Below, in pieces: positions 2,207 through 51,030 of a DNA stretch of 64,000 nt (the first letter of the stretch is position 1; each line of letters opens with the position of its first letter). Both the position numbers and the translations under genes were made by a program. A model generated the notes under the pieces. It worked only from the letters and a program-made list of their open reading frames with translations, was not told the DNA's origin and made no database searches. Where the stretch lies: NCBI RefSeq assembly GCF_000007005.1, contig NC_002754.1, one strand, 5' to 3'. The DNA is from Saccharolobus solfataricus P2 (GTDB lineage Archaea; Thermoproteota; Thermoprotei_A; Sulfolobales; Sulfolobaceae).

Positions 2207-2339
2207 CTCGTACTTTCTCGGCTTAAGATTTAAATTTCTTAGAATCATAAGTATTAATTGTGCGAGGGTTACGAGGTTCATATTGGTAACCCTCACAAAA
2301 AATCTCGTAACCTATATATAGGTTAATTAGCTGGGGAGA

Positions 2340-2470
2340 GTAATATTCTCCTCAGCTGGGGAAAAATGGTCGAATGGGAAATTGAAGCAAAGTCTTCGGG
2401 CGAGGGCGTGACGAGCCCCTACAGTCGGACTGAACATTGTGAAAATATTCACGAATATAGGTGTGACACA
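2340..2470 (+). ncRNA. Candidate bridge RNA (target- and donor-binding loops)
   Basis: ACTGAAC (2429-2435) equals the right end; ATATAGG (2455-2461) complements the left end CCTATAT; GCGAGGG (2400-2406) complements the target flank CCCTCGC. Boundaries approximate. Confidence 0.8.
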
Positions 2471-3069
2471 AGCGTAGGGGTAATTGGAATAGACGTATCA
2501 AAAGAACACTTGGTAACAAGTAAGGGGAGGGTGAGAAAATTCACAAACAACGAGAAGGGCTACGAAGAAATACTAACCATGAAGCCAAACATCATCGTAA
2601 TAGAACCCACAGGAGTATACTCAACAAGACCTTGCCAATACTTCAAAGAAAGAGGAGTGAAAGTCCTACTAGTCAGCCTTGCTATGGAAAGAAAAGGACG
2701 TAAGGGGAAGAAAACAGATTTTTACGACGCAGAAAAACTTGAAAACATGGTAAATAAGTCTAGAGAATACGTTAACAACCCCTTGAAAGAGTTAGTATCA
2801 CTCTACCTCTTCATGAAGGATGTGCAAACGAAACAAGAGAACAGGTTAAGGAGAGCTCTCTTCCTCGTGAGCGACGAGGAGAAGTTGAGCGAGGAGAGAT
2901 TGGAGAAGTTCTCTAAGGGAGACTTCTCTGACGTAAAACTGTATCAACTGGAATACACTGGTACAGTACTACGTGAGATTCAAGTCCTAGCGAGGACACT
3001 AATTCAAACACGAGAAGAGTTGAAGGAGGTGAGGAAAATGATAGAGGGTAATGTGCCTCAAGACCACGT

Positions 3070-4118
3070 TAGTGTTTCCGAAAAGTTTATAGATTAGTAT
3101 TACCAGATTGAACTATGCAAGATTTGGTTCAAGCTTATAAGGAAGAGAAGAACGCGAGAATTAAGGAGAGGATTCTTGCGGTGAAGCTGCACGTAGTTGA
3201 TGGTAAATCGGAGAAAGAAGTTTCGAAAATGCTTAACAAGGGCTATTCCACGATAAAATTGTGGATTGGCAAGTACAAGAAAGAAGGTCTTGATGGACTA
3301 AAGGACAAGCCCAGATCAGGAAGACCCAGAAAAGTAGAAGAGGAAAAGATAAAACAAATTCTGGAAGATAAGCCCCAAAAATACGGAATACAACAAGAGT
3401 ACTGGACAATGAAAACACTCAAGATAGCACTACAAGAACAAGGAATAGAATACAAGAAATCCAGACTATACGAACTAGTCCACGAACTAGGATACAACCT
3501 AGTAAAACCCAGACCTACCAACATCCAAGCAGAAAAGGACAAGTGGGAAGATTTTAAAAAAAATAAAGAAATTGGAAAGAAAGGCACTATTCTTTCTAGA
3601 CGAGTGTAGGACAGTAATTAGCACGTCAATTAAGAAGGTTCTAGCTAAGGTTGGCAGTAAGCCCGTAATGCGCGTCAATATAGGTTTTTCCTCAATCTAT
3701 GTTATTCTAGCTATAAACGCTTGGACCGGCGAAGTAGTGGTTTCTCTTGCTAAAAGGCCTAACTCTGAATCCGTTAAGTATTTCTTGAGGTACTTTAAGA
3801 GGCGTGTGGGTAGTGGTAGGGTTTACATGGTCATGGATAATTACTCTCCTCACAAGACTAAGGGTACGCTTGAGGTTTGTCGCAGGAAGGGTATTCATCC
3901 CGTGTTTACTCCTCCTTACTCGCCTGAGCTTAATATGGCTGAGGCGGTCTTCAAGTCCCTCAAGAACTACATGAGCAATAAAATATTCTATACGATAGAA
4001 GACGTTAAAAACTGTATTAAACAGTTCTTTGAAGAAAATAAGTATAGATTTAATCTTAATGCAATAACATACCTAGGATTAGATAAAATTGAAGTCTAAG
4101 AACTTTCCGGAAATACTA
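3070..4118 (+). mobile_element. ISC1048-like IS630-family IS
   Basis: 1049 bp, TAGT..ACTA TIRs, GT duplication; HTH ORF 3115-3609 and DDE ORF 3572-4099 joined at an A-run. Confidence 0.9.
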
Positions 4119-4493
4119 GTGTTACTCACGATTTCCGGAATAGGGAAACTGGCAGCTGGGATTATAATTGGGATTGTGGGTGATATTAGGCGCTTCCCAA
4201 GACCTGAATCCTTCGTTGCTTATTGCGGTTTAGACCCGGTAGTTGAGAGGAGTGGTAGGATTGAGGTTAGAAAGGGTATCTCCAAGAGGGGTAACAAGTA
4301 TTTGCGTAGCTTGTTTTATTTCCTTGCCGAGACTCAATATTCGCGTAACCCTACTCTCCTTAAGCTCCACGAAGCTCACAAGGACAAACTGAAGGGTAGG
4401 AAACTGTACACTGCCTTAGCTAGGAAGTTGGCTAGGATAGTGTGGAGTGTTTGGTATAATAATAAGCCTTATGAGGTGAAGTGACCCTCCCCT

Positions 4494-4520
4494 ATCACGC
4501 GGATTGAAAGAGTCCGCGTG
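4494..4520 (+). terminator. Hairpin just after IS110 transposase stop
   Basis: CACGCGGA-loop-TCCGCGTG 8-bp stem; function inferred. Confidence 0.35.
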
Positions 4521-4577
4521 GCAATAGTAGCTGATACTATGCTCAAAATTCGACCGAAAGATTTATTACTGAACGCC

Positions 4578-4722
4578 CTCGCACATAAGCTTTTTCAGAG
4601 GCTGTTTTCATGTTCTAATTCCTTAGCTACATCTCGATCGAAACGATTAATTGTGAAAATTTCTAGTTTAATTTTATTTTACTATATGATATCGAATAAG
4701 ATGACTGCATGAGAACACTCCC
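4578..4722. mobile_element. Part of ~330-bp MITE (GGGAGTGTTCTCA TIR family); left part at ~2250-2310
   Basis: Homologous to 36078-36405; split by the IS110 insertion. Confidence 0.75.
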
Positions 4723-4738
4723 TATAATTTAGAGAGTG

Positions 4739-5338
4739 TTATTTGGAAGTTTGCCTTATATCCTTTAACACATTTTCTATTTCCTTGAATAGTTCGTCAA
4801 TAGCCTTTTCTATGCAGTTATCTTTTATCTTTTTTAACTCCTTTTTATATTCTTGACAGCATCCTCTGCCTCTAAATTCTTTTATCTGCTCATTACAAAT
4901 TTTTAAAATAAAGTCCTCAATACAGCAATAATATCCGAGAAAGACGAAGTACATACGAAATTTTTTACTTCCTACTGAACATGAAAATCTATAAATATCA
5001 TATTCATTGTTAAGCTTTATCACGTCAGATGTGTATATTCCGTAATCTTTTGCAGTTTCCTTTACGCATTCTACATAATCTAAGGTACAGTGTTCCTTAT
5101 CTATAAATATTATGTAGTTCAAGGAGAATCTCTTAACATCGTTTTTAACAAACTTAAGTACACTCTCAATCCCAATACCTATAGGCAAACTTTTACCCTT
5201 AGCACCGCTCTCCGGAATAAACAGTAATAGCTCACAGTATTTATCCTTGTTCTTCTCAAGAGCGTTTCTGACAATCTCCCTATCAAAAGATCCGTCTCCA
5301 AAAACTATTTCGGTTGTAGCATTACTGCTGAATTTCAT
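4739..5338 (-). CDS. TOPRIM-like (DUF3226-like) protein, partner of ABC ATPase
   Basis: IVFGDG-FD, IFIDKE and CCIEDFI motifs; abuts upstream ATPase. Confidence 0.6.
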   Translation of the reverse strand: MKFSSNATTEIVFGDGSFDREIVRNALEKNKDKYCELLLFIPESGAKGKSLPIGIGIESVLKFVKNDVKRFSLNYIIFIDKEHCTLDYVECVKETAKDYGIYTSDVIKLNNEYDIYRFSCSVGSKKFRMYFVFLGYYCCIEDFILKICNEQIKEFRGRGCCQEYKKELKKIKDNCIEKAIDELFKEIENVLKDIRQTSK

Positions 5339-6732
5339 CAGTGTATTTTTAATGCAGTATATCTTAAATCTTCATAGTATAGCCTATCCAAAACCTCCTC
5401 AGATGTAAGAACTTCATATTTATCATCGTTAATTAATATAAACCTAACCTTATCCGACCGCTTTTCAGCTAAATACGCGTAAATATCACTGCTTTGTGTG
5501 GTAATAAGTATTAAGTCAACGTCTATTTTCAGTAGAAGATCATAGAACATCTTAAGCAAATCCGGATGCAATGCGAAGCCCTCCAGATCATCTATCAGAA
5601 TAATTCTCGGCTGGTAAATTACATATAGCAAGATGAAATTCAATAAGCTCTTATAACCATAACCAAGTTCGTTGATTGACACATCAGTTCTGTCATTAAA
5701 AAGCACCCTAAGTTCATTCCCAGAAGATAGATAAACGTAGAATATGTTAGGGTCAAATGAGTTCAATAATTCAGTAACTTTACGTAAACTTGATTTCACG
5801 TAAGGGAGTACCTTATCGTCAATCACAAAGTCAATATCGTGGGAGTATATTAAGAGTACGTTCACATCTGCAGACCTATTAACTTGTGAGTAGGAAAACT
5901 CAGCCTTATAGTAGGTGTAGTTTACAAACAGTTCGGTTTCAGCAATTTCTGTTGAGATATTCCCTCTGAACTTCCTTATCTTATCCTCATTTTTACCTAA
6001 CATTGCTATAGCTTCCAATATGGTTGTCTTCCCTACGTTATTCTTACCCAGAATTACCCCTATTTTAAACTCTGGAAAAATCATCTTGAAATCCCTAAAC
6101 CTTCTAAAATTACTTATCCTAATTCCAATTCCCAGGCTTGACAGTCGTTCCGGTAAGCTTAATATATACTGAGTGTTTACATAAGGAGAGTCGTAAAGCC
6201 TGACAAATGCTCCTTTACCGTATTTGTAAATCCAGGTGGAATAAAGCGTGTAAGGATGGCTCTTTACTATACTTATGGGTATTAACAAGGGATGAGGTTC
6301 AACGGGTCTCCACGAATCTTTAGGATCATATTTTAACATTTCACCCACTATGGAATTTTCACTCTTCTCAGACAGAGGTTTATGTCCCATTACGCTTATA
6401 GGCTTAAAAGGGAAAGGATTTCCCTTACTAAAGAGCTCCTTTTTTATACCATCCTTCTCGATGTAGAAAAAGGGGACATCGCCAGTCCAAATTACAACAC
6501 CTCCTCTTTCCATAAATTTAAATAGCGGGGTCTCATTTACGGGTATTTTAGGATATTCATATAGGGAATATGGAATAACGTCCGTACCGAAAATTAGGAA
6601 AGCCCTCTCTTTTTGAGAGTTAACCCAATCAACTACTGAATTATAATCTACGACTTTTACCTCCTTAAGTGGCTTACTGCAAAGTTCGTTTGCCCAACTG
6701 TATGTTTTACCGCAATAGATTGCCATTTCCAT
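5338..6732 (-). CDS. Unknown N-terminal domain fused to AAA_15/AAA_21 ABC-type ATPase
   Basis: Walker A GKNNVGKTT, LGYGYK signature, LIDDLEG Walker B, TTQS; extra ~200-aa N-terminus with FMERGGVVIWTG. Confidence 0.8.
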   Translation of the reverse strand: MEMAIYCGKTYSWANELCSKPLKEVKVVDYNSVVDWVNSQKERAFLIFGTDVIPYSLYEYPKIPVNETPLFKFMERGGVVIWTGDVPFFYIEKDGIKKELFSKGNPFPFKPISVMGHKPLSEKSENSIVGEMLKYDPKDSWRPVEPHPLLIPISIVKSHPYTLYSTWIYKYGKGAFVRLYDSPYVNTQYILSLPERLSSLGIGIRISNFRRFRDFKMIFPEFKIGVILGKNNVGKTTILEAIAMLGKNEDKIRKFRGNISTEIAETELFVNYTYYKAEFSYSQVNRSADVNVLLIYSHDIDFVIDDKVLPYVKSSLRKVTELLNSFDPNIFYVYLSSGNELRVLFNDRTDVSINELGYGYKSLLNFILLYVIYQPRIILIDDLEGFALHPDLLKMFYDLLLKIDVDLILITTQSSDIYAYLAEKRSDKVRFILINDDKYEVLTSEEVLDRLYYEDLRYTALKIH

Positions 6733-6914: not shown

Positions 6915-7210
6915 AAAGTATTAGTAAAATTAAATTAAACTAGAAATTTTCACAATTAGTCGTTTTAATCGAGATGTAGCTAAGGAATTAGAACGTGAAA
7001 AACGGCCTCTGAAAAGCTCATGTGCGAGGGTTATGAAATCTTTTTGTGGTCGTACTAGAATGAGCCTCGTAAACCCTTTCACATAAGCTTTTCTAAAATA
7101 ATGTCTTTGTTCAAATTTCTATATCTTAAGCGTTAAACAAGAGTTTTTCCATATTACTCCAATATTTTTACAAATATTTTTCGAATTTCATGACTGTTTG
7201 AGAACACTCC
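6915..7210. mobile_element. Inverted copy of ~330-bp MITE
   Basis: Reverse complement of 36078-36405; one TIR kept (GACTGTTTGAGAACACTCC). Confidence 0.75.
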
Positions 7211-22133: not shown

Positions 22134-23492
22134 CAGTATGGGAATCTCATTTTTCTTGTAAAAATGATAATATATGTAAGATTGAACCGCACCAGTTTTA
22201 TTCAAATATAACTGCATATATTTTATGAAAATGACAGTTAATAAGTCAGTTTTCAATAGCAGAATATAAATATATAGAATTAATTTCACGTAGCTGGAAG
22301 GAGGTGCATAGGGTTAGCTGGAGTTTAGGGGAATGACGTCTTCACTTCACGGAACGCGCGTCCTTGTTCCACTCTTACCTCCCGATCGAGGAGGTTCGAG
22401 AGGGAGACCGAGAACTCCCACAACTTTACCTTCCTCCAAGAACGGATCAAGAACCAGACATTCAAGAGAAGATAGGAAAGCAGAACGAGAACCAGTTCCT
22501 TCCTCACGTCACAAGTCCTAGTCCTGATCCTGAACTCCTCAAGAGAGCGAAAAGCATTCTCAATCCCCCACCTCTCCCTATACATCTCGGCAAGGACTAT
22601 GGCATCATAAAGATCCATCTCCCTCCTCACGAGGAAGGCAATACTCTTGCCGTCTTCCTTCCTCAGAATAATGAGATAAGCTCCACTCCCATGTCTCACG
22701 CAGAGAAATCCAGTATATCTAACTCCGCCAAAACTCACATCCACATCCTGCAACATCCCCTTGTACTTCTTGTACATCTGGGCCTTGGCAGATATGACGA
22801 AGTCCAAGCCCAACTCCAAGAGGTATCTAATCACTTCGTTCACCGCGAACTCCTTGTCCGCGAAGACCATGACGAGCCTCAGCTTGTCCTCCTCCAACTC
22901 CTTCACGATTACCTCCATCACCGCCTTGAAACCTTCAGCTACGTTCTTCACGGTCACTGGGATCACGTCCAAGAAGCTCCTCGTCCTCCCCAGGAGGAAG
23001 ATCGCAGCTTGAACCAGTCCCCACGACGTCCCCTTAGTTGGCTTTATCCTACTCAAGAAACTCTTGTCAGCGTGATATTGAGGTATGGCATGGAAGTCCA
23101 CTGCTACCCTCCTGTCCCTGACTCCCCTTAACGTCATCCTCCCCATCTTCCTCAACGCATCCCTCACGTCCTCAACTTGAACCGCGTTCAACTTTCTCAA
23201 CGCTCTTCTCCCATCTTTCCCCAACCTGCTCAAGTAGCTCCCACTCGCCTTAAGCAAGGCACTGAGGAGTTCCTCAGGGAAAAGTATTTTAGTGAGGACC
23301 GAGTAAATTATCTTGAGGCGGACCTGGCGAAGTCCCGGTTGAACTTCGCCGGTTTAGTTGTATTCTCATGCTTCATATGTTCAAGTCCGCCCTCGTATAT
23401 ACAAACTTTTCTACAGAAATTCTCATCCTCTCAACTTTTTCTGTATTTCATTCATCTCGTTTTTTTACGAGAAAAAAGAGATTCCCATACTG
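22134..23492 (-). mobile_element. ISC1359-like IS, full length, 1-bp frameshift near 23318
   Basis: Exactly 1359 bp between TIRs; one C missing relative to the 57607 copy. Confidence 0.92.
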
Positions 23493-26531: not shown

Positions 26532-26708
26532 CTGGGGGTCGGACTTTCATTGAGATTTCATGAATTTGTATTCAACCCCTCGTCCTCATACCCCTTATTT
26601 TCCTCCCCATGCCGTCTACGGGACTAACTCCCTTCAAGGACATGAGGAGTTTCATCAGGTACCTTCCTCCCCCTCACATTGCTCACAGAGTTCATTGTGG
26701 CACCCTCT
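26532..26708 (-). mobile_element. Orphan tnpB 3' end / right end (IS607- or IS605-like)
   Basis: GC-rich island ending TGAAAGTCCGACCCCCAG, similar to 28416-28519. Confidence 0.5.
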
Positions 26709-28166: not shown

Positions 28167-28271
28167 CCTATATATAGGTTAATTAGCTGGGGAGAGTAAT
28201 ACGCCTCAGCTGGGGAAAATGGTCAAAAAGGTAACTGAAGCCAAGTCTTCGGTCTAGGGCGTGACAAGCCC
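28167..28271 (+). mobile_element. ISC1229-like IS110 left end (target-binding loop only)
   Basis: Homologous to 2311-2419. Confidence 0.85.
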
Positions 28272-28336
28272 CTTATATAAAACATATTAGTCAGATCTGC
28301 GTAATACAGATCTGAATGGGGTGTAGGTGTTACCAC
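28272..28336 (+). mobile_element. ISC1190-like IS110 left-end fragment
   Basis: CTTATATAAAACATATTAGTCAGATCTG matches the reverse of 21718 onward. Confidence 0.85.
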
Positions 28337-36077: not shown

Positions 36078-36405
36078 GGGAGTGTTCTCAAACAGTCATG
36101 AAATTCAAAAAACGTTTGTAAAAATATTGGAGTAGTATGGAAAAACGCTCGTTTAACGTTTAAGATATAGAAATTTGAACAAAGACATTATTTTAGAAAA
36201 GCTTATATGCAAGGCTTTTCGAGATCCATTCTAGTACTACCACAAAAAGATTTCATAACCCTCGCAAATAAACCTTTTTCAGAGGCCGTTTTTCACGTTC
36301 TAATTCCTTAGCTACATCTCAATTAAAACGATTAATTGTGAAAATTTCTAGTTTAATTTTATTTTACTATATAATATCGAATAAGATGACTGCATGAGAA
36401 CACTC
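36078..36405. mobile_element. 328-bp MITE, GGGAGTGTTCTCA TIRs
   Basis: Both TIRs present; partial copies at 4578, 6915, 29745, 38845, 50802. Confidence 0.75.
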
Positions 36406-36502
36406 CCTCATGTTGTAACCTTATTCTCTAATTTGTAATAAAATTATATCGTATCGACAGTTCTCTCAATTACTTGTTTTTAGAGGTAGCTAATAGAAAT
36501 AA

Positions 36503-37104: not shown

Positions 37105-38097
37105 ATGAGTAGTGAAAGATTGATTGACGAGATCTTAAAGAACCCACAGCTTATCTCAGCACTGGCCGATAAAGTTTATGAAAAATTAAAGGACGAGATT
37201 GTAATAAGAAAATTAGAGGAAAACACAAAGAGCATTCAAGCCCTACAAGAGGCTATAAAGAGACATGGGGATGCGATAGTTTCACTCCAAGAGGCTGTAA
37301 AGTCCTTACAAGAGGAGGTGAAGAGACAAGGTGAAGCCATTGTATCACTCCAGAAGACTGTTGAAAAACAAGGTGAAGCCATTGTATCACTCCAAGAAGA
37401 GGTGAAGAGACATGGGGATGCGATAGTTTCACTCCAAGAGGCTGTAAAGTCCTTACAAGAAGAGGTGAAGAGACAAGGTGAAGCCATTGTATCACTCCAG
37501 AAGACTGTTGAAAAACAAGGTGAAGCCATTGTATCACTCCAAGAAGAGGTGAAGAGACATGGGGATGCGATAGTTTCACTCCAAGAGGCTGTAAAGTCCT
37601 TACAAGAAGAGGTGAAGAGACAAGGTGAAGCCATTGTATCACTCCAAGAAGAGGTGAAAAAGCATTCTAAAGCTATTCTTAGGCTTGCTAAGAGTCAAAA
37701 AAGACTTTCGATTGAGTTGGGTAGTTTCACTTCGAGGGCTGGTAAGGGGTTGGAAAGAGCCATGCTAAAACTTTATAAAAAGTCTTTAGAATTGCACGGT
37801 GTAGATCCCAAGAGAGTTAAACATGGCAATATTGTCGATACTGTTGGTATCATAGAGAAGGGTAGGTCCTTTGAGGTTGACTTTTACGAAACTAACGACT
37901 ACATCTACGTTTTCGAGATAAAGAACTTCTCTGATAAGGACGTTATTGACCAAGTTTTCGTAAGGAAGAAGTTGTTCTCGGTCTTGTATAACAAGCCTCT
38001 AAAAGTATTTGTTGTTACTAATTACATAGAGAGGGATGTTAAGGAGAAGCTTGAAAAGGAGGGAGTAGAGATTATTGCCTCCCACGTTATTGACTAA
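37105..38097 (+). CDS. Coiled-coil PD-(D/E)XK nuclease (DUF3782/DUF1626-like)
   Basis: Heptad stalk followed by EVDFY..YVFEIKN. Confidence 0.8.
   Translation: MSSERLIDEILKNPQLISALADKVYEKLKDEIVIRKLEENTKSIQALQEAIKRHGDAIVSLQEAVKSLQEEVKRQGEAIVSLQKTVEKQGEAIVSLQEEVKRHGDAIVSLQEAVKSLQEEVKRQGEAIVSLQKTVEKQGEAIVSLQEEVKRHGDAIVSLQEAVKSLQEEVKRQGEAIVSLQEEVKKHSKAILRLAKSQKRLSIELGSFTSRAGKGLERAMLKLYKKSLELHGVDPKRVKHGNIVDTVGIIEKGRSFEVDFYETNDYIYVFEIKNFSDKDVIDQVFVRKKLFSVLYNKPLKVFVVTNYIERDVKEKLEKEGVEIIASHVID
37261..37655 (+). repeat. 147-bp (49-aa, 7-heptad) tandem repeat, about 2.7 copies
   Basis: AGACATGGGGATGCG at 37261, 37408 and 37555. Confidence 0.95.
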
Positions 38098-49592: not shown

Positions 49593-50801
49593 GACGTTGT
49601 CCGATTTGAGCAAAATTAAAAACCATTATAATTACAACATCTCAGATTATACTATTCTTCATTATATTCAGCCATAAAAAATAATATAATATATATTAAT
49701 GAGGGAAAATACAGATAATTGTACAATCTTGCAATAAAATTTGCCATAACAATAAGTAAACACGTAAACGAACCTCGTTAATTAACGAGTACCTTCGTCC
49801 TAATCCTCGTCGAAAGAATTTCGAGATCACGATAGAAGTTAAGGAAGAATACCTCCATAACCACTCCCCTTAAGGTTGTAGACGAAGCCTTACCTTCCCT
49901 AATCTCAACACCACTACCCTCAACCGGAAGCCTAGCACTACCAACACCCTTAACTAAGACGTCCTTCCTAGAAATCCAAGCCCTATCAGCCATTAACTTA
50001 ACGTTATCAAATGAAAAGGCTAGATCACTCAAATTAGCCAATCCAACCTTGAAGTCCCTAACGAAATTAGTCCTCCTTTCCACAAGATTACAGACCTTAA
50101 ACCCGAAGTAGGACTTACCGTGCTTCCTACCCCAACCCTTATACTTCCTAAAGGCTGTGAAGCTCTTGAGCTTGGAAGTAGTATAACCCATGAGGAGAAA
50201 AACGTCATTGAACCCCATCTCCTTAAGGTCAAGTGAGATCTTCTCAAGACCGTTTTGAAGACTCCTCTTTCCTGGGTAGGCTTCACGGAAGAATGTGTCA
50301 ATTATGTGGTAGTCCTCGAACCTATCGTTTTTTCTCTCCCAACTTCAAGTTCAAAGCCCTTTTCCCTATACTCGCTGATCGCCTTGTCCAAAGCCTTGTT
50401 TAACTCATCCATCAGTGTTGTTCTCATCGTCTCGCCCTCTTGAATAACTGTTTGTTGTAGTTTCTTGTAGAAGGAGAATACTGTGCTCTTTGGTGGAATT
50501 TTCCCGCCCAAGAAGTCCATAAACATCTTACTGTCCCTAATTTCTCCCTCCAAGTTATTCCAAGAGATGTCGAAAATGAGCTTGATTAGGAGGAGTTTGA
50601 GGAGTGAGATGACGTTCCACTTAGGCTTCTTGGAGTAAAGGGACTTAAGCTTACTCCTAAACGTTTCTCAAGGGAAGGATTTATCTACCTTGAGCAAGAG
50701 GTCCTTTTCAGTTGAAATTGCCTTTACCATAATATTATCTCATCCTAATTTCTTATTAATATTACTCATGAATTGCCATTTTAATCAACTTGGATAACGT
50801 C
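49593..50801 (-). mobile_element. IS5-family (ISC1212-like) element, inactivated
   Basis: 1209 bp, GACGTT(G/A)TCC TIRs; stop and frameshifts in transposase. Confidence 0.75.
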
Positions 50802-51030
50802 ACGATCGAAACGACTAATTGTGAAAATTTCTAGCCTGATTCAATTTTACTAATACTTTTCGAATAAGATGACTGCATGAGAACACTCCCTAATAAAAAG
50901 AGTTTATTTTAGCTAACTTATAATATGAAACATAGTTATTTATCATTATAAACTAAACTTTTGGTCTAAGATGACTTTTTAGGCTTTATGACAGTTAAAA
51001 AAAACTGGTTAGTACTATATACTTACTTGA

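Follow-up and report, generated by a model that had tools for sequence, protein, structure and literature searches.

The window, a stretch of 64,000 nucleotides from Saccharolobus solfataricus P2 (NC_002754.1), holds at positions 2311-4577 a copy of ISC1229, an element of the IS110 family and IS110 subgroup, with the dinucleotide CC at each junction (Table 1). The element starts as CC-TATATATAGG (2311-2322), and its right terminus reads ...ACTGAACG-CC (4568-4577) or, in longer form, ...TTATTACTGAACG-CC. The span is 2,267 bp because an IS630-family insert is nested in a 1,216-bp ISC1229 copy. This insert, which measures 1,051 bp including a 2-bp duplication, interrupts the recombinase gene, and its removal in silico restored a recombinase ORF of 355 aa. 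The bounds given in a preliminary description of this DNA were correct, while the element length that they imply is inflated by the nested insert. Since its gene is split by another IS, the window copy is unable to make the recombinase and is a broken relic. A second copy of the IS630-family (ISC1048-like) element lies at 10479-11535, in the opposite orientation to the copy at 3070-4120; the two are 98-99% identical.

The restored recombinase has an N-terminal DEDD RuvC-like domain and a C-terminal Tnp domain with a conserved serine. It scored 178 bits against NCBIfam NF033542 ('IS110 family RNA-guided transposase'; cutoff 140), and a phmmer search of the PDB returned IS621 and ISCro4 at E-values of 1e-11 to 1e-12, the best match being ISCro4 (9T56) at 4.8e-12. 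Residues D43, E80, D118, D121 and S279 are invariant in 12 homologues. A protein search gave Sulfolobales homologues of 68-99% identity, the closest from S. solfataricus, some of which already carry the name 'IS110 family RNA-guided transposase'.

The window also has two paralogous empty sites, at 7034-7023 (minus strand) and 36255-36266. Both read ...GATTTCATAA-CC-CTCGCA (...ATAA-CC-CTCGCA), with CC once only, and are collinear with both flanks of the insertion. An empty site of another guide class, in L042, reads GAGGGAAAC-A-CC-ACTACCC and similarly has one CC. From the empty-site comparison it follows that the insertion consists of TATATATAGG...ACTGAACG plus one extra CC, without inverted repeats. 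A short core that is present once in empty sites and twice in occupied ones, combined with the absence of terminal inverted repeats, is the insertion pattern of IS110. The CC cores proposed in the preliminary description at 2311-2312 and 4576-4577 are borne out by the letters and by the single CC of the two empty paralogues. A core made of the last two letters of the left guide, instead of CC, was considered and rejected, since empty sites share and duplicate CC alone.

ISC1229 has inserted into one arm of a perfect 15-bp palindrome, in which TGCGAGGGTTACGAG (2261-2275) pairs with CTCGTAACC followed by CTCGCA, an arm that the element has split (2304-2312 and 4578-4583). From exactly position 4576, the right flank is part of a repeat that recurs in the window. 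This repeat of about 250 bp is present in at least four copies (2200-2312 plus 4576-4730; 7150-6880 on the minus strand; 36150-36416; about 50773-50899) and holds the palindrome targeted by ISC1229. Inverted copies of the repeat at 4576-4684 and 6922-7030 flank two ORFs (4739-6732, minus strand), one of 199 aa without a Pfam match and one encoding a 464-aa AAA_15/AAA_21 ATPase; the region looks like a small cassette with inverted-repeat borders. Elsewhere in the window, a 147-nt unit is repeated in three tandem copies with 84-100% identity (37233-37673), and an Rfam match to the Sulfolobus sRNA Sso133 lies at 26603-26665 on the minus strand (56.5 bits; gathering score 44).

Table 1. Positions of the ISC1229 copy, its predicted RNA features and related fragments in the window.
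Feature	Position	Strand	Remark
Left flank, target left half	2261-2310	+	Collinear with unoccupied paralogous repeats 7150-6880(-) and 36150-36416
Left-target 9-mer	2301-2309 (register 0) or 2303-2311 (ISC1229-lineage register)	+	
CC core, left junction	2311-2312	+	Once in empty sites, at both junctions when occupied
Right-donor sequence CC+TATAT	2311-2317	+	Complementary to right donor guide (RDG)
Left-end terminus TATATATAGG	2313-2322	+	Invariant columns
5' hairpin P1 (AGCTGGGGAG / CTCCTCAGCT)	2329-2357	+	Fold and compensatory changes
Recombinase gene, 5' part, DEDD/RuvC-like domain	2366-3069	+	Pfam PF01548 DEDD_Tnp_IS110
Target-binding loop	2369-2412	+	Closing stem GUCG (2369-2372) / UGAC (2409-2412)
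Left target guide (LTG) ATGGGAAAT	2374-2382	+	
Target-loop hairpin	2383-2398	+	
Right target guide (RTG) GGGCGAGGG	2398-2406	+	
Donor-binding loop	2416-2480	+	Outer stem CCCCUAC (2416-2422) / GUAGGGG (2474-2480)
Donor-loop closing stem GUCG / UGAC	2424-2427 / 2464-2467	+	
Left donor guide ACUGAAC	2429-2435	+	
Donor-loop hairpin	2437-2454	+	GTGAA/TTCAC at 2439-2443 / 2448-2452
Right donor guide AUAUAGG (RDG)	2455-2461	+	
First catalytic Asp, in IGIDVSK	about 2483-2503	+	
IS630-family (ISC1048-like) insertion, HTH and DDE_3 ORFs	3070-4120	+	By comparison with intact orthologous copy
Recombinase gene, 3' part, Transposase_20 / Tnp domain	4121-4484	+	PF02371; conserved ERSG serine
Right end	4485-4575	+	Near-invariant in 69 right ends
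Right-end hairpin CACGCGGA...TCCGCGTG, loop ATTGAAAG	4496-4520	+	
BRE/TATA-like motif CGAAAGATTTATTA	4555-4568	+	Conserved; 9 nt from right end
Left-donor sequence ACTGAAC	4568-4574	+	Followed by spacer G at 4575
CC core, right junction (4576-4577), then right target CTCGCAC	4576-4584	+	RTG match 8/9
Third ISC1229 left-end fragment, P1 and target loop only	28167-28274	+	LTG AAAGGTAAC, RTG GGTCTAGGG
Second ISC1229 left-end fragment	57427-57606	+	Donor loop same, target loop different: LTG GCCTTTGAC, RTG GGTAAGAGG

Relatives of the element were collected in a census of 120 loci, in which nhmmer found 58 left ends and 69 right ends. The comparative power comes mostly from the metagenome scan and from single look-ups (one place each), because the scan of genome contigs by protein alignment gave few loci (4 of 28 were Sulfolobales-like). 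Viral contigs, scanned for exact patterns, and plasmids, searched by blastn, gave no matches. In the window itself, the left-end fragment at 57427-57606 is cut off after 180 nt by an IS with a 375-aa DDE_Tnp_1 transposase, copies of which lie at 57607 to about 58968, 1095-2021 and 22132-23465. Non-autonomous derivatives have lost the recombinase gene and retain both ends, including the bridge RNA of the left one. The copies of a 560-575-bp form (L093:1448-2021, L094:1448-2013 and L096:1447-2004) have the same two internal deletions but occupy different sites, and their target loops match their own flanks at 7-9 of 9 positions. A shorter form of 329-334 bp (L102, L103 and L114; minus strand) lies inside a different IS110-family gene. 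In S. shibatae (L116:873-1143), a full copy begins about 270 bp past the point where an older partial left end with another target loop starts; from the sequence, this is a nested insertion of one ISC1229 copy into another.

Folding of 2311-2480, a check named in the preliminary description, predicted in silico a structured left-end RNA (minimum free energy -55.2 kcal/mol, z = -4.3) with a 5' hairpin and two internal loops, each of which encloses a hairpin (GAAGC...GUCUUC in the target loop, UGUGA...UCACG in the donor loop). The two loops are alike in build, and each runs through GUCG, a guide, a hairpin with a bulged U, a second guide and (C/U)GUGAC. The structure was named by hand on an alignment of 39 left ends and its pairs were counted over the 38 distinct sequences, where 94.2% of cells were paired as against 37-45% with slid partners. 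Compensatory changes were found in the left-end alignment at eight pairs and in 50 cells, compared with 12 in shuffles. In P1, four pairs show such changes, for example CG in 15 rows, UA in 14 and UG in nine. When RNAalifold was run on the raw MAFFT alignment, indels in the loops caused it to miss the 5' hairpin. Rfam has no family for the ISC1229 left-end RNA, and the below-threshold matches were at chance level only.

The two guides of the donor loop correspond to the two ends of the element. On the 5' side, ACTGAAC (2429-2435) equals the right end at 4568-4574; on the 3' side, ATATAGG (2455-2461) is the reverse complement of 2311-2317, i.e. of the core plus left end. Both had been placed at these positions, around a GTGAA/TTCAC stem, in the preliminary description, which had also read GCGAGGG (2400-2406) in the other loop as the reverse complement of CC-CTCGC in the right flank (4576-4582); all three readings proved exact. 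In 200,000 shuffles of the left-end interior, the three 7-mers occurred at frequencies of 0.008, 0.020 and 0.020 singly and of 5e-6 jointly, and they are placed at structurally equivalent spots of two similar loops. Over the 38 distinct left ends, both donor guides stay invariant. The 69 right ends likewise show almost no variation, either in ACTGAAC or elsewhere through ...TTTATTACTGAACGCC. The few variant right ends (L073, L104) have no compensating change in the donor guide. The predicted pairing of the donor loop is supported by complementarity and joint invariance.

The target loop behaves differently. Mean column entropy is 0.00 bits for ACTGAAC, 0.04 bits for ATATAGG and 0.00 bits for the closing stems, against 1.45 bits for the LTG (2374-2382), 1.39 bits for the non-core part of the RTG (2399-2404) and 0.36 bits for the whole left end. 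Across about 60 related left ends, the target-guide columns are the sole hypervariable ones. These entropies and the invariance of the right ends indicate that donor loop and ends are kept constant as a set and that the target loop can change freely. Invariant internal copies of ACTGAAC and ATATAGG might also be expected if they were subterminal transposase-binding sites in DNA, as in classical IS, rather than RNA guides, and the terminal CCTATATATAGG is palindromic. Such binding sites would leave unexplained both the variation of the other loop, with its match to the flanks of each copy, and the compensatory maintenance of the surrounding stems. Moreover, solved members of this protein family read DNA through such RNA. 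Binding sites of this kind are therefore considered an extremely unlikely explanation.

The loop of the right-end hairpin carries ATTGAAAG, which is the conserved 3' end of Sulfolobales CRISPR repeats. In Sulfolobus promoters, the TATA centre lies about 26-27 nt upstream of the start. The BRE/TATA-like motif would be a promoter that drives RNA from the circle junction, and on the circle its predicted start falls near 2326, just before P1 and about 2-3 nt from the 5' hairpin. A Cbp1 ChIP study found strong binding in the ISC1229 3' flank (PMC10883916), and the hairpin at 4496-4520 is situated directly upstream of the motif at 4555-4568. Two loci show the ends of the element in succession. In L037:1800-1830, a right end plus CC runs straight into 12 nt from the start of a left end, and in L040:1100-1125 a left end comes after the 10 terminal nt of a variant right end. 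These arrangements look like tandem or circle-junction remnants and agree with the predicted order of right end, CC and left end.

The target guides were compared with the flanking DNA over the ISC1229-like copies, as had also been suggested in the preliminary description. The 9 nt that precede UGAAG served as the left guide and the 9 nt that precede CGUGAC as the right guide, and duplicates were collapsed. On the left, 20 of 34 distinct guide/flank pairs matched at 7/9 or better, where permuted pairing expects 3.2; on the right, 11 of 28 did so, where permuted pairing expects 2.7. On either side, 0 of 10,000 permutations reached as high a count. About 40% of the left pairs and about 60% of the right pairs have no match to their own flank. 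The left guide has the sense of the top strand and would pair with the bottom strand, and the right guide is complementary to the top strand. The same sense of guide matches (5' to the bottom strand, 3' to the top strand) is described for IS621 (PMC11208160).

All 11 right matches fall in one register, with the 3' GG of the guide opposite the CC core. A single register was sought for the left guides as well and none fits, the good matches being at offset 0 in 11 cases, +1 in five, +2 in three and +3 in one. Left guides mostly end 1 nt before CC, as in target GAGGGAAAC-A-CC and donor ACTGAAC-G-CC, and the next RNA letters do not match; some lineages have a left guide that extends over one C of the core. 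Core complementarity of the IS621 type was found for the right guides, which end in GG opposite CC, and not on the left side, where the core appears to be unpaired.

Guides and targets also change together. Guides GAGGGAAAC and GGGTAGTGG match the site GAGGGAAAC-A-CC-ACTACCC at 9/9 each. Paired changes include GGGTATTGG with CCAATACCC (L096) and GGGTAGTGG with CCACTACCC, as well as GACATTATC with GACATTATG (L120) in comparison with GACACTATC with GACACTATG (L081). In L030, L116 and L117, the guides match the flanks on both sides. Causality could in principle run the other way, if the target loop were rewritten from the flank after insertion, by repair or conversion, instead of selecting the site. 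Guide regions do change by short patches, and chimeric copies exist (L064, L043). Against rewriting, identical target loops occur at several independent copies of a repeated target, including those of the short non-autonomous L093, L094 and L096. Further, one guide is complementary and the other identical to its flank, which copying does not predict, and we know of no mechanism for such rewriting. Site selection by the loop is preferred, and rewriting from the flank is regarded as scarcely credible.

The region had been called a 5' non-coding end, which is not correct, as an annotated ORF from ATG 2366 covers it. This ORF is open and in frame in 33 of the 39 left ends. Ahead of the first catalytic Asp, the frame has just two canonical starts, ATG 2366 and GTG 2408, and both fall inside the guide region. 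In the database ORFs of the ISC1229 family (355-357 aa), the first ~38 codons are bridge-RNA sequence, and the variable 'residues' 3-6 and 12-13 are the target guides. Insertions of 1 nt put the ATG out of frame in the L003 and L073 groups.

Because the ORF runs through the guide region in most copies, sequence conservation there could be partly protein-coding. In its full form, a coding interpretation would make the region either the 5' part of the gene, coding for the N-terminal extension MVEWEIEAKSS..., or a leader in the recombinase mRNA, with the guide matches coincidental in an AT-rich, repeat-rich genome. The widely retained frame, the lack of a canonical start codon from the donor loop to the first catalytic Asp, and the annotation of database proteins from ATG 2366 agree with it. 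In contrast, the NF033542 profile and the IS621 alignment begin only at residue 39, and variability is concentrated in two short blocks that track the flanking DNA and not third codon positions. The stems carry compensatory changes, lineages frameshifted in the guide stretch are still present at several sites, and the three 7-mers are jointly rare in shuffles. A purely coding origin is very unlikely on these grounds. Coding and guide functions may overlap, so that the coding interpretation is a partial rival only.

The preferred interpretation, which we consider very probable, is that 2311-2480 is the ISC1229 left end encoding a bridge RNA with a 5' hairpin, a target-binding loop and a donor-binding loop. 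The basis for this is the anatomy, the boundaries, the complementarity, the co-variation of guides with flanks, the covariation of the stems and the protein homology. By homology to IS621, the DEDD/serine recombinase would use the bridge RNA to pair the circular element with a genomic target, and strand exchange would take place at the CC common to circle and target. Circle formation, RNA production and RNA-protein binding are all steps that we infer. The circle junction is predicted to read ...ACTGAAC-G-CC-TATAT, i.e. ...TTACTGAACG-CC-TATATATAGG; its bottom strand would be read by ACUGAAC and its top strand by AUAUAGG. A target would have the form LT(9)-N-CC-RT(7), the 5' guide reading the bottom strand and the 3' guide the top strand including the core.

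The two-loop bridge-RNA design put forward in the preliminary description is supported by the hypervariable target columns, flank matching, stem changes and protein homology. Its logic had been called complete; both loops, the donor guides and the right target guide can be read in the window copy, while the left target guide is mismatched. Similarly, a thermophilic archaeal guide has support at the level of the family, and the word 'programmable' would rest on natural guide/target covariation and on homology.

The window copy deserves separate comment as regards its target loop, whose agreement with the flanks, found at the family level, is half retained. Its RTG GGGCGAGGG matches CCCTCGCAC at 8/9. 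For its LTG ATGGGAAAT, the match to the left flank is 1/9 in the register most common in the family and no more than 4/9 at any offset; a weak left guide had been noted earlier, and in the register used then the match is 3/9. A copy at the same insertion site in another S. solfataricus strain (L029; CP033235.1) has an intact recombinase gene. It differs from the window copy at 5 of 1,216 nt, all within 2402-2448 and three of them within the right guide. The difference is a short patch confined to the guide region, the elements being otherwise identical.

Another S. solfataricus copy, L115, has a left guide CCTCGTAAC that matches the left flank of the window copy, TCTCGTAAC, at 8/9, and for this reason the left guide of the window copy looks swapped. 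The L115 left guide also matches the opposite arm of the palindrome at 9/9, and its right guide matches its own right flank at 7/9. Chimeric copies, or sites that fit the loop of another copy, were found in L064, L043 and L034/L066 (compared with L039). The likeliest explanation for the left mismatch is guide exchange between copies, guidance in trans by the RNA of another copy, or both. Excision of IS621 uses the same RNA across both junctions, according to 2026 work (PMC13626964). By analogy, the window copy would be hard to excise by its own RNA, because its left guide no longer reads the left flank. Among the predicted targets of its own loop in the 64-kb window, the best matches at 15/18 (minus strand, about 14924); these are moderate candidates.

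These observations can be extended into a broader proposal, offered tentatively and regarded as possible but rather doubtful, that ISC1229-like elements in Sulfolobales form a shared guide pool. Short-patch conversion would exchange target-loop halves between copies, any circle with the common ends could be served in trans by bridge RNAs, and miniatures would spread with their own guides. One and the same sequence would serve as guide and as the N-terminus of a thermostable recombinase, with left guides that do not pair with the core.

RNA guidance of this kind is not a new principle. It is to be expected in an IS110 element, and at NCBI the protein family already bears the name 'RNA-guided transposase'. 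Large IS110 surveys included archaeal genomes. ISC1229 is catalogued in ISfinder, and in S. solfataricus P2 it has been reported as one intact and several decayed copies (PMC10883916). [quoted passage not shown] In the literature searched, ISC1229 was found only as an IS110-family transposon with sites bound by Cbp1, notably in the 3' flank, and no paper on a Sulfolobales or thermophilic bridge RNA was found.

Bridge recombinases are under development as programmable tools for genome rearrangement. To our knowledge, all characterised bridge recombinases are mesophilic and bacterial. ISC1229 offers a natural orthologue from an organism growing near 80 C, which might serve as a thermostable scaffold, together with a compact predicted RNA of about 150-170 nt. 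It also offers more than 15 natural target loops with cognate sites, and non-autonomous derivatives that carry the RNA and ends only. The family would be a test bed for how far the left guide must reach the core, as well as an entry to archaeal RNA-guided recombination that bears on the proposed evolutionary link between IS110 and Nop5. Its practical and mechanistic value lies in guide diversity, mosaic loops, miniature derivatives, left-guide geometry and thermostable origin. For annotation, the first ~38 codons of many Sulfolobales 'IS110 family transposase' ORFs would be mostly guide RNA.

ISC1229 shares with IS621 of E. coli (Durrant et al. 2024, PMC11208160; structures 8WT6-8WT9) a DEDD RuvC-like domain joined to a serine Tnp domain, a 2-nt core at both junctions and the lack of terminal inverted repeats. 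Both have the RNA, predicted in the case of ISC1229, in the left end before the gene, where a 5' stem-loop precedes the target and donor loops; in both, the 3' side is complementary to the top strand including the core, and the targets are repeated palindromic sequences. The two differ in the core itself, which is CC in ISC1229 and CT in IS621. In the published IS621 model, all four interactions include pairing of the core (PMC11208160). Unlike that model, ISC1229 has right guides of 7-9 nt and left guides that usually stop 1 nt short of the core in a variable register. Its guide region, unlike that of IS621, overlaps the sole canonical in-frame starts. The host is a thermoacidophilic archaeon with a putative BRE/TATA promoter, in contrast to the sigma-70 promoter of IS621, and protein identity to IS621 is low (E about 1e-11), the best aligned stretch being the C-terminal domain.

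Among the other members of this recombinase family, IS1111-group elements with seekRNA share the dual-guide principle, although their RNA lies in the right end. An IS1111/seekRNA assignment of ISC1229 was rejected, as the variable guide blocks are in the left end and the 93-nt right end is nearly invariant, lacking any variable block that resembles a guide. ISCro4, reportedly a mesophilic bacterial orthologue among the bridge recombinases, is said to have been engineered for human cells. Its recombinase (PDB 9T56) has the same domain order as the ISC1229 protein and is the best PDB match to it. On the strength of its sequence and predicted RNA, ISC1229 is best regarded as a thermophilic archaeal member of this known class of RNA-guided recombinases.
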